Below are positions 54,039-57,896 of a stretch of 64,000 bases of DNA, in pieces. Position numbers and translations under genes: made by a program. The DNA comes from Salisapilia sapeloensis CBS 127946. Taxonomy: Eukaryota; Protista; Oomycota. Positions within the stretch are counted from its first letter, which is position 1. Each line of letters begins with the position of its first letter. The notes below the pieces were generated by a model. That model was not told the DNA's origin. It did no database searches and saw nothing but the letters and a program-made list of their open reading frames with translations. The stretch spans positions 38,973 to 102,972 of the forward strand of contig JAADVB010000037.1 in assembly GCA_023334545.1 (NCBI GenBank). Direction: 5' to 3'.

Positions 54039-54614
54039 ATGTCTGGAGTCCAAGTTGTTGCAGCTGGAAATCCACGCAAAGGGGATATGAATGGCGCTGA
54101 GGAAGAGCAATGTATTCATGATATCGTGAACTGGTTCCAGCGAAAGACCAAGATAGCGGACGTTGGTGACAAACGAGCCGACGTGGAAGCTTTGGAAGAA
54201 GAGGTCGGATGCGAGCTACCAGACACCCTAAAAGAACTTCTTACCAAACAAAAGGGTGGCGTCTGGTTCGACGAGTATAAAACTCTCACTGCAAAGGTAA
54301 TCCTGTATGTGTATTTAGTTGAGTATCAATTGTCTAACTTCATGGCATAGGAGATAGTGGTCCTCTCGGAGAACCTGGCGTCTGTAGACGGATGGAAAAA
54401 AGGCTTTATTCCATTCGCTGCAAACGTTGATGATCAAGCTATCATTTGTGACCTAAATGCAAAGGAGGCGATCTTTGAATTCAACGAGGATGGTAAAGGA
54501 GACAAGCTTGCGCCATCAATCTCGGTCTTTTTGGAAGAGTACCGCAACAAGCTTCTCTCTGGCCAATGCGACTTTATCGAGGATGTCGGCATCATTGAAA
54601 AGAGTAGAAAGTAA
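54039..54614 (+). CDS. SMI1/KNR4 (SUKH) fold protein, 2 exons
   Basis: VEALEEEVGCELPDTLKELL..QKGG...FIPFAANVDDQAIICD...IFEF...LAPSISVFLEEY follows the SUKH pattern; intron 54297-54350 is in phase. Confidence 0.68.
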
Positions 54615-55103
54615 TATGCAGGTCACAGGAGAGCGGCACAATCCGAGAAGAAGACGCATCTGTCTCGGGCCTAGTTGGATAGACCGATAATAAATTCCAT
54701 TCATAAACTTGTTGATGCATTCTTATGGATAACTTTACTCGTAGGAGCACATCAGATGAATGCATCATGGTAGAACGGTCTATAGAGCCGTGTTAATTAA
54801 TTAAAGTACACTAGCACGAATTGATATTGGTGTCGAAATTCAGAAGTGATCATCTCTTGCATCACAGCCGAAGCGAATTTATTCGAAAACGTATCACAAG
54901 ACAAAAGCGTGCTACCTCTTCTATCGAATATCGATAGAATCATCTATGGACCGACTGCACTCTCAACTATCTTGTTCTGAAGCTTCGATGTCCATGACTT
55001 GCTGCTGAGTCAGTCGGGTGTATCCATATGCTTCCGTAACTTGAAGTTGGTGGGTTGGCATGAGCCACAACTGTACCGCTCGGATAGCACACTCGACCAA
55101 ATT

Positions 55104-56391
55104 ATGAAGGCGATTGTCGACAGCCTGCAGCGCGTGGTGGCGGCACAACGTCTAGACGCGCGGCACGTCGTTGCATTCAGCGGAGGCGTGGACTCTTCCC
55201 TCGTAGCAGCCGTGGTCCATCTCACGGTGCCAAAGGGCAAAGCCGCTGCTTGCCTCGGTATATCGCCAGCGCTCTCGCAAGGACAACGCGAGCAGGCGAT
55301 TGACGTCGCAAATCATATTGGCATCCCTCTGTGGCAGACGCCGACAAGCGAAGGCGAAGACGAGAACTACATTGCGAACGAAGGAGCGAGGTACTGTTAT
55401 CATGTCGATAGCATGGGTCTCACCAGTCTGAACGCTCGATACGAATGTCAATTGGTTATGTGAATGTAGCTGCTACTACTGCAAAACGAACCTGTACACC
55501 ACCATCAATGCAGTCGCGACCTTTACTCGGTACGATTCATAAGAATGTCGTATAAAGGAAATTGGTATAAGGTTTGTATGTGACGCAGCCAAGAAACAGG
55601 AGAGCATCCAGTGATTTACAATGGCACCAATGCGGATGACCAGCAAGACCCCACTCGGCTTGGTATGCGACTTTTGTGTCTTCTCTGGAGATGTGGGACG
55701 CTGACAGTGACATTGACATTGACGTTGACAGGTCTTGTGGCTGCTCGAGAGTTTGACGTCGTGAGCCCCTTGAACATTTTGACGAAACAGCAAGTTCGCG
55801 AGGTTGGATAAATTTTATGCCTACTTCTCGCATATTGCATCGACTGACCTGCAATTCCTATGTCAATCCAAGACTGCCAAGTACCTAGGTCTGCCCAATT
55901 GGAATGCCGCTGCATCGCCTTGTCTCCGCTCTCGCCTTCAATTCGGTGTGGAAGCAACTCATGTCCGACGACTTACTATCCTTTGAACGAGCTATCGCTG
56001 ATATAAACGGTTGAGGTAGGACCATTTGCAGCGGGTGGAAGCAGCCGAGCAGTTCGTGCGGTCGCAGATCGAGTTTCCGCCCGAAGCCAACATGCGCGTA
56101 CGGTTTCTCGCAGGAAATCGGGCAGCAGTGGGTATGCCATCACTTCAACTTTCATCAATCATTCCTTGTCTCAAGGATGCGATATGCAATGCCTAGAACT
56201 CGACCCGCGGGAACTCGAAGCTGCTCGAGAACAACGTCTGATCATCGCATCGAAGCTCCAAGATTTAGGCGCGTGTAGTGAAAATTTTTATCGTGTTGCT
56301 TCTCGCTGACCTGATCTGAATAGGCTTTGCCGGTGTCCAGCTACGTCCGTTCAAGACAGGCAGCTTGAGTGGCTACCAGCCAAGCGTGTAG
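55104..56391 (+). CDS. larE: LarE-like ATP-dependent sulfur transferase (PP-loop; TIGR00268-type), 8 exons
   Basis: Exons 55104-55390, 55470-55529, 55589-55662, 55732-55802, 55873-55962, 56020-56131, 56197-56268, 56324-56391 splice in frame. They give VAFSGGVDSSLV, CYYCK, NGTNADD..D.TRLG, SPL...K..VRE.AKYLGLPNW...SPCLRSRL, RVEAAE...MRVR, LGF..V..RPFKTGS. Confidence 0.85.
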
Positions 56392-56745
56392 GACGCCCCA
56401 ACTTTTTGAACCTGTCCAAGTTGATTTGCAATTCGATTAAAAAACCCGTTTCTGCACTTGGCTACCTTTTTTATCGACTTCCTCTAGCGCGTATGTTCCT
56501 TCTTCTATGCCCGTGTGCACGATTAAAGTAAGACGTTTGACTCCTTGCCGCGCAATCGCTGCTTTGGTTCGCGTCCGATAAAAAAGGAACTCGGCGACCG
56601 TACATGATTGGCCGATCGGTTTCGACCACCTGTCGCAGACGACATGCTCATTTGGCTGCGGTTCCGGACATTACGAATGCCCACTTTTACATTAGACGCT
56701 GACAACTCACACGCACTGCAGCAGCGTCTGAACGGCTACTCGCGT

Positions 56746-57896
56746 ATGAACCCAGACGACGAATATAGCACTCGATACAATCGGTCAAACTCGGAAAACA
56801 TGGAGAATGCGGTGCCTAGTCGAGGATGGGTCGGCACCACGCACAAGTATGCGCATCGGTTTCGTGTGCTCGAGTTCTTTGCGTGCATCGTGATTTTCAT
56901 GTTCGCCCTCGTCTTTGACCTCATTGCTGTCAATGAACGTACGCATCTTTTTATAGGTTGCAACTTTACCCAGCACTAACGTCATCTACTGTAGGCAAAA
57001 TTCCTTCCGTCAAAGTCCCCATCAGCGCTAACAAAACCGTCTACGCGCGTGATCCGGCCATCGACGATGAGATGATGGACGAGCAAGTACCCATGTGGCT
57101 CCTCATGCTCCTCTGCATCTCCATCCCGTTCGCAGCGAATATCACGGTGAACTTCATCCTCCCCATGTTCACCAACATTCGGATCATCGAGCATGATACG
57201 CGAGACTTTACCCTCAGCTTCCTACTCTCGTGCGCACTCAGCCAGGCCGCGACCCACTTTATGAAGAATATGACCGGGCGATTCCGTCCATCTTTCTACG
57301 ACATGTGCGGATGGCAGTACGACGTCGAGTGGGACGGAGAGACGAACTTGTGCACGCTTCCAGCTGAAAAAGAGGCTCGTAAGAGTTTCCCGTCCGGCCA
57401 CTCGTCTTTTGCCTTCTGCACGCTCTTCTTTCTAACGCTTTACCTCCTTGGTCGCTGTCGAATCACATGCGAGCGACGGGGTGAGTACACCTTCAGTGGT
57501 ATGACCAAGACGCTGGTCCTGTTCATCTGCTTCGCCCCGTCGCTGTTGGCGTCCTGGATCGCCATCACGCGAACGATGGACAACTGGCACCACTACGCCG
57601 ACATCCTCGCAGGGAGTATCCTCGGCGCTATTAGTGCCAGTATGGCCTATTCGTACAACTACGGATCCATCTTTGACTGGCAAAAGTCCGGCCTGCCGTT
57701 CCAAGTGTACCACGCTCGTCGCGTCCTGCATCGCAACGACGACGACGCGACGGTCGGTACTGTCAGCAACTTTGAGCCTGAGATGCGCCACCACGCTGCT
57801 CCTGACTCACGTTCCAAGAGTGTGGGCGGGGACGACCATGTCATTCCGATCATGGGCCAGTCGCAATCCACCAGTAACTACGAGTATAGGCAGTAG
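56746..57896 (+). CDS. PAP2 / lipid phosphate phosphatase, 2 exons
   Basis: C1 KNMTGRFRP, C2 SFPSGH and C3 TRTMDNWHHYADI motifs; six hydrophobic segments. Confidence 0.9.

Follow-up and report, generated by a model that had tools for sequence, protein, structure and literature searches.

Does the intron-rich gene at positions 55104-56391 of the plus strand encode a functional LarE, the enzyme that inserts two sulfurs as the nickel-pincer nucleotide cofactor is made, and if so, how would this enzyme obtain and transfer its sulfur? We examined this question in the 64-kb stretch of DNA that contains the gene (hereafter called the window). The sequence comparisons described below suggest that the gene produces a functional oomycete LarE of the [4Fe-4S] type that participates in nickel-pincer sulfur insertion, and we place the probability of this reading at roughly 85%.

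Splicing by hand, for which positions 54700-56900 were read, joins eight exons into 834 nt of coding sequence and a protein of 277 amino acids (Table 1). The outer coordinates of this model are exactly those given in a first-pass annotation of the locus, which had predicted that eight exons would yield a full-length protein of about 270 amino acids. Both splicing and the RNA junctions described below bear out this prediction. The open reading frame begins with the ATG at 55104 and ends with a TAG codon at 56389-56391, and no in-frame ATG is present between the preceding stop codon (54978-54980) and the start. The introns are 55 to 79 nt long, and six of the seven have a GT donor, the exception being the GC donor of intron 7. 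All of the motifs listed in the first-pass annotation are located in the spliced protein, specifically SGGVDS (residues 26-31), CYYCK (97-101), NGTNADD (127-133), PCLRSR (180-185) and the C-terminal GS motif within GSLSG (268-272), as is MRVRF (219-223).

Table 1. Exons and introns of the larE gene and its flanking genes, in window positions.
Feature	Positions	Strand	Description
Upstream neighbour	54357-54611	+	SMI1/KNR4 (SUKH)-like, weak match: 21 bits, below cutoff
Exon 1	55104-55390	+	N-terminal helix and PP-loop S26-S31 (55179-55196), from translation
Intron 1	55391-55469	+	GT..AG, 79 nt, phase 2; RNA junction in X1, X3
Exon 2	55470-55529	+	C97 (55471-55473), C100 (55480-55482), then K101
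Intron 2	55530-55588	+	GT..AG, 59 nt, phase 2; RNA junction in X1, X3
Exon 3	55589-55662	+	74 nt; NGTNADD and DPTR; same length as Saprolegnia exon
Intron 3	55663-55731	+	GT..AG, 69 nt, phase 1; RNA junction in X1, X3
Exon 4	55732-55802	+	71 nt; same length as Saprolegnia exon
Intron 4	55803-55872	+	GT..AG, 70 nt, phase 0; RNA junction in X3 only
Exon 5	55873-55962	+	90 nt; PCLRSR with C181 (55921-55923) and S184; sole family match TIGR00268
Intron 5	55963-56019	+	GT..AG, 57 nt, phase 0; retention gives an in-frame stop
Exon 6	56020-56131	+	112 nt; R220 and R222 within MRVRF
Intron 6	56132-56196	+	GT..AG, 65 nt, phase 1; RNA junction in X1, X5, X6
Exon 7	56197-56268	+	72 nt, from translation
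Intron 7	56269-56323	+	GC..AG, 55 nt, phase 1; RNA skip in X1, X5, X6
Exon 8	56324-56391	+	C-terminal FKTGSLSG and TAG
Downstream neighbour	56958-57893	+	PAP2 lipid phosphatase, 89 bits

RNA sequencing data confirm most of this splicing pattern. Runs X1 through X4 are small runs from the source organism in which 76-89% of the words sampled from the locus occur, and runs X5 and X6, which derive from a relative that is about 93% identical, contain parts of it. RNA contigs were aligned to positions 54900-56600 to read their junctions, and those of introns 1, 2, 3, 4, 6 and 7 are evident, with spliced RNA present in four runs. Unspliced contigs are also abundant and cover introns 1, 2 and 4 through 7, intron 5 included. 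Thus, intron-retaining RNA or DNA must also be present in the libraries, and the unspliced contigs may reflect either source. One X3 contig (record 15) is a single unspliced piece that spans 55871-56413. The larE gene is a real, expressed and spliced nuclear gene of an oomycete-like organism.

The unusual donor of intron 7 is also evident in the RNA. Contigs from X1, X5 and X6 carry a 55-nt skip at 56265/56321, with five ambiguous letters. Because this skip fits no other pair of donor and acceptor sites considered, intron 7 is assigned as a GC-AG intron with the donor GCGCGT. Its removal generates the sequence DLG/FAGV (the slash marks the junction), which agrees with the family consensus LGF. 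An in-frame GT donor located 6 nt downstream would result in a skip of 49 nt, and no such skip is present in the contigs. The orthologous intron is of the GT..AG type in Saprolegnia, Pythium and Phytophthora nicotianae.

The arrangement of introns is best appreciated by comparison with other oomycetes. Exon models were derived for four annotated orthologs, and their introns were mapped on the protein alignment. Saprolegnia diclina larE carries seven introns and shares all seven window introns at matching alignment columns, with phases 2, 2, 1, 0, 0, 1 and 1. Fewer are shared with Pythium insidiosum (introns 1, 2, 4, 6 and 7 of the window, from a total of five), P. nicotianae (introns 3, 5, 6 and 7, from a total of four) and Albugo candida (introns 1, 3, 5 and 6, with a fifth intron elsewhere). 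Intron 2 is common to Pythium, and its match in Saprolegnia falls within a two-codon indel. In addition, four consecutive exons (74/71/90/112 nt) are equal in length in the window and in Saprolegnia. Since all seven introns are common to Saprolegnia, they are older than the split between Saprolegniales and the peronosporalean lineage, and the sampled oomycetes therefore inherited larE from a common ancestor in which it was already a nuclear gene. The ancestral intron set thus dates the nuclear residence of larE to before the divergence of Saprolegniales and Peronosporales.

The junction of intron 5 is absent from all RNA contigs shown, which include X1, X3, X5 and X6 among the spliced runs. 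Might this intron be poorly spliced or never spliced, such that the product stops after ...GVEATHVRRLTIL and a functional protein has been lost? The contigs shown do run through intron 5 unspliced, and its donor (GTCCGA) is weak. However, introns 4, 6 and 7 are likewise unspliced in some contigs while being spliced in others, and the exons past intron 5 keep all of the family motifs and are correctly spliced in two species. The alignment column and phase (phase 0) of intron 5 are also those of annotated introns in S. diclina, P. nicotianae and A. candida, and this conservation in three other oomycetes argues that the intron is genuine. Its removal restores the conserved sequence GVEATH/DHLQRVEAAE (again with the junction marked), and other donors and acceptors were ruled out since their use breaks the reading frame. 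Moreover, a comparison of exons 1 and 2 with a contig from a sister species reveals 14 synonymous and 6 nonsynonymous differences, with none in the motifs, and divergence in the introns is about equal to that in the exons. The 14:6 ratio indicates purifying selection, which argues against lost function. We therefore consider it very unlikely that function has been lost through this intron, and the eight-exon model is retained with six of its seven junctions (including that of the GC-AG intron) observed in RNA and the remaining one backed by its conserved position and phase.

To which family does the 277-residue protein belong? The NCBIfam model for LarE (TIGR00268) has a cutoff of 150 bits, and scores on this model were obtained from exon pieces for the window protein and from full-length sequences for its orthologs. 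Exon 1 matches TIGR00268 best, at 52.8 bits, followed by NAD synthase at 22 bits, and TIGR00268 is the sole family matched by exon 5, at 22.9 bits. The closest ortholog, hereafter P0001, is 62% identical to the window protein and scores 198 bits on the LarE model. A second oomycete protein (P0059) scores 155 bits, and six further relatives score 163-196 bits.

Some evidence could be read as placing the gene in a different PP-loop family (NAD synthetase, GMP synthase, TtcA/Ncs6, MnmA or QueC, for example). The only Pfam matches are NAD_synthase (27 bits) and Asn_synthase, both of which fall on the PP-loop region of exon 1, and the window pieces match no LarE-specific Pfam family. Likewise, public NCBI records name the orthologs 'NAD/GMP synthase' or 'asparagine synthetase domain-containing', and one record is named LarE. 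These names are uninformative because Pfam reports only NAD_synthase or Asn_synthase on the PP-loop. Against this assignment, the NCBIfam LarE equivalog outscores its rivals by 30 bits for exon 1. For full-length P0001 the margin is about 170 bits, and this ortholog scores at most 31 bits on other PP-loop families and does not reach the cutoffs for NAD synthetase, GMP synthase or Asn synthase (64-400 bits). MnmA-type models reach 16 bits for exon 1 and no more than 32 bits for eight relatives, and no TtuA, Ncs6 or TtcA model is among the NCBIfam matches of the window pieces and of these eight relatives, two of which are from oomycetes.

Structural comparisons also favor LarE. The best solved relative by sequence is Lactiplantibacillus plantarum LarE (E value of 1e-18). 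An AlphaFold model of P0001 has a pLDDT of 90.8, and a fold search with this model returned LarE chains exclusively among the top 50 shown, including 5UNM, 5UDT and 8CNZ, with E values of about 1e-19 and target TM scores of about 0.8. Furthermore, bacterial relatives of the window protein are encoded in lar operons, as described below. Given these results, membership in a different PP-loop family is barely credible, and the original assignment of the gene to LarE is upheld by the NCBIfam matches of pieces and orthologs, by the fold of P0001 and by the operons of its relatives.

Homologs of this LarE are widespread among oomycetes. Exon 1 retrieved 598 matches from a collection of 1.84 billion representatives, and the spliced 277-residue product aligns end to end with these, best with P0001 (354 bits). 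Identity to oomycete proteins is 55-62% along the full length. When P0001 was used as the query, about 30 named oomycete proteins were retrieved, from Pythium, Phytophthora, Peronospora, Bremia, Albugo, Lagenidium, Aphanomyces, Saprolegnia and Achlya, as well as proteins from diatoms, Triparma, Rhizochromulina, Chlorokybus and Mesotaenium. None of the relatives retrieved with P0001 exceeds 62% identity to the window protein, and the latter is therefore apparently absent from the protein collection. A scan of genome contigs with exon 1 produced one locus, an aldehyde dehydrogenase gene that shares the sequence EQAIDVAN and was rejected as a false match.

In a maximum-likelihood tree of 70 sequences, the oomycete proteins form a monophyletic clade (SH-aLRT 95) in which the window protein is nested. 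It resides in the half of this clade that includes Albugo, Lagenidium, Pythium, Globisporangium and Phytophthora (SH-aLRT 96), apart from Saprolegniales. Thus, larE is an ordinary oomycete ortholog that has been vertically inherited within oomycetes. Its proposed standing as an old, functional nuclear gene gains support from this clade, from the seven introns shared with Saprolegnia and from the 14:6 ratio noted above.

A more distant origin can be proposed only tentatively. The LarE proteins of oomycetes, ochrophytes (diatoms, Triparma and Rhizochromulina), streptophyte algae (Chlorokybus and Mesotaenium) and marine picoeukaryotes might possibly descend from one ancient eukaryotic acquisition, although we regard this as doubtful. 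If true, then aerobic eukaryotes would long have made the cofactor with the help of an oxygen-sensitive [4Fe-4S] LarE, as opposed to oomycetes having gained this capacity by a recent transfer, and a thioredoxin fusion would service LarE in some lineages. Metagenomic LarE homologs (L068:9020-11371, L065:2907-4742, L080:8535-10262, L058:9779-11371 and L073:2597-4228, and also P0016), of which several are marine, have a thioredoxin domain (PF00085) at the C-terminus as well as extensions at the N-terminus, and some of these genes are located on contigs of up to 316 kb. Such fusions hint at a redox partner for sulfur transfer.

The chemical class of the enzyme can be predicted from its cysteine residues. 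It had been proposed that all three cysteines of a CxxC...C triad are present, and these are found in the spliced protein as C97, C100 and C181. The CYYC sequence of oomycete proteins aligns over W97..A100 of L. plantarum LarE, and, when aligned via P0001, the cysteine of PCLRSR is positioned one residue after L. plantarum Cys176. Among 60 aligned homologs, the CxxC cysteines and the lysine that follows (C105, C108 and K109 in P0001 numbering) are invariant, and the PCL cysteine is at least 90% conserved. A triad with the same one-residue shift is known from Thermotoga maritima LarE, in which a [4Fe-4S] cluster is held by Cys92, Cys95 and Cys172 and bears a transferable sulfide, making the enzyme catalytic (PMC9283937). 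The first-pass annotation had left open whether the sulfur donor is a sacrificial cysteine or a [4Fe-4S] cluster. The second half of this proposal is favored and the choice itself can be dropped, since the triad points to the catalytic [4Fe-4S] class and not to the sacrificial one. We therefore infer from these residues that window LarE carries a cluster of this type.

Other active site residues are also retained. The PP-loop (S26-S31) aligns with the SGGIDS sequence of L. plantarum LarE via P0001, and paired alignments (P0001 with 5UDQ, and the window protein with P0001) identify S184, R220 and R222 as the counterparts of Ser180, Arg212 and Arg214. In the L. plantarum enzyme, all three are ligands of the substrate phosphate (for Arg212 and Arg214, see PMC9283937).

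A mechanism can be modelled by homology on the LarE proteins of T. maritima and Methanococcus maripaludis. The PP-loop would use ATP to adenylylate a carboxylate of P2CMN, whose phosphate would be held by S184, R220 and R222. The [4Fe-4S] cluster, bound by C97, C100 and C181, would have an open iron that carries a non-core sulfide. A cysteine desulfurase would supply this sulfide, which would then attack the acyl-adenylate. Two such rounds would yield P2TMN, into which LarC would insert nickel to form the nickel-pincer nucleotide for use by a LarA-family enzyme. The client enzyme in oomycetes would probably be of the published D-gluconate 2-epimerase type. In this scheme the enzyme would turn over rather than be sacrificed, and the donors of sulfur and of the cluster would presumably be eukaryotic machineries. 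Because it has no N-terminal extension, LarE is probably cytosolic. Given the predicted Fe-S class, reconstitution of oomycete LarE would also have to be carried out anaerobically and with a cysteine desulfurase supplied.

The genes that surround larE are unrelated to the nickel-pincer pathway, as is true for both the SUKH-like and the PAP2 neighbours. As the first reading of this DNA had indicated for larB and larC, neither gene is present within the 64-kb window, and the same is true for larA homologs, nickel permease genes and a second larE. Gene neighborhoods in other oomycetes have a different composition. A convergent Sugar_tr/MFS transporter gene follows larE in P. insidiosum (L089:4369-6414) and A. 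candida (L091:4232-6617), and a WD40 gene precedes larE in Pythium and P. nicotianae. Neither kind of neighbour is found beside window larE.

Bacterial relatives provide a more informative context. In a metagenome scan that yielded 80 loci, the genes for bacterial LarE proteins that share 46-48% identity with the window protein overlap larB (AIRC) and follow it directly (L008-L012), and remoter bacterial representatives are found in larE-larB-larC operons (L074, L077, L081, L085 and L087) whose LarC was confirmed as Pfam Ni_insertion. No lar partners are present in the contexts of Ignavibacteria LarE, P0267 and P0213. A LarC profile search gave 8000 candidates in which bacterial LarC is dominant, with no eukaryote among the 120 listed. 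Long LarE homologs carry no fused LarB or LarC, and their only additions are LRR, PWWP and thioredoxin domains. Specifically, the LarE-like proteins P0127 and P0020 combine a PP-loop piece with LRR in one case and with PWWP/DEK_C/Med26 in the other, and in both cases a fusion of gene models in a eukaryotic assembly is the probable explanation. At two bacterial loci (L008:8855-9835 and L002:8874-9869), the gene directly after larE is homocysteine S-methyltransferase-like (PF02574), and the first of these loci also has larB upstream.

Might the oomycete protein be a LarE-like sulfur insertase for a non-classical product, such as a dinucleotide pincer cofactor of the ornithine-cyclodeaminase type, or for another thiocarboxylation? 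A LarE-like gene (P0122, L006:6418-8420) adjoins, in divergent orientation, an ornithine cyclodeaminase gene (PF02423), and this context agrees with the LarE-anchored discovery of an ornithine-cyclodeaminase-type enzyme that is mentioned elsewhere (PMC13524815). Despite this precedent, the clade of P0122 is separated from that of the window protein by a branch with an SH-aLRT value of 99, and the nearest bacterial relatives of window LarE are paired with larB. The retention of S184, R220 and R222 as substrate-phosphate ligands, and the fact that an oomycete LarA homolog is active with the nickel-pincer nucleotide (PMC11770544), also weigh against a different product. We consider this alternative unlikely, and favor classical nickel-pincer sulfur insertion as the function of window LarE.

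A eukaryotic nickel-pincer pathway is not without precedent, having been published for oomycetes, and NCBI includes orthologs of this LarE from about 30 oomycete species. Biosynthetic genes for the cofactor and LarA homologs were reported from some unicellular eukaryotes, with every eukaryotic LarA homolog falling in the LarAH15 branch, and LarAH15 of P. nicotianae was found to be an active D-gluconate 2-epimerase (PMC11770544, J Biol Chem, 2024). No other paper found ties the nickel-pincer cofactor to Phytophthora. In this regard, our finding adds little: the sulfur-insertion step of a pathway known in oomycetes is encoded in this genome too. What is new is the predicted Fe-S class of the enzyme, the recognition of all seven introns as ancestral and the confirmation in RNA of a GC-AG intron. 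We found no assay of any eukaryotic LarE in the literature, which makes this gene a convenient choice for one.

As an oomycete gene, window larE most closely resembles the orthologs from P. insidiosum (ATCC90586_000319), P. nicotianae (F441_21907) and S. diclina (SDRG_10812), with which it shares 55-62% identity, its motifs and its clade. It differs from its counterparts in Pythium (five introns), Albugo (five) and P. nicotianae (four) by keeping all seven introns, as does Saprolegnia, and from those of Saprolegnia, Pythium and P. nicotianae by the GC donor of intron 7. Unlike most oomycete orthologs, its product ends without a C-terminal tail of 15-40 residues.

Among characterized enzymes, the [4Fe-4S]-dependent, catalytic LarE proteins of T. 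maritima and M. maripaludis (8CNZ) share with window LarE the CxxC...C triad with its one-residue shift, the PP-loop and, as judged from the ortholog model, the LarE fold. Identity to 8CNZ is only about 21%, however, and window LarE is the product of an intron-bearing eukaryotic nuclear gene, with a predicted cluster and a predicted activity. L. plantarum LarE (5UDQ) likewise has the PP-loop, the counterparts Ser180, Arg212 and Arg214, and the C-terminal GS motif. In that enzyme a single cysteine (Cys176) is present and W97 and A100 occupy the positions of C97 and C100, and it gives up its own sulfur, turning over just once, while catalytic turnover is predicted for the window protein. TtuA, Ncs6 and TtcA combine an adenylating PP-loop with a tri-cysteine [4Fe-4S] cluster to which a non-core sulfide is attached (PMC9283937). 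These proteins form a family separate from window LarE and act on RNA substrates.
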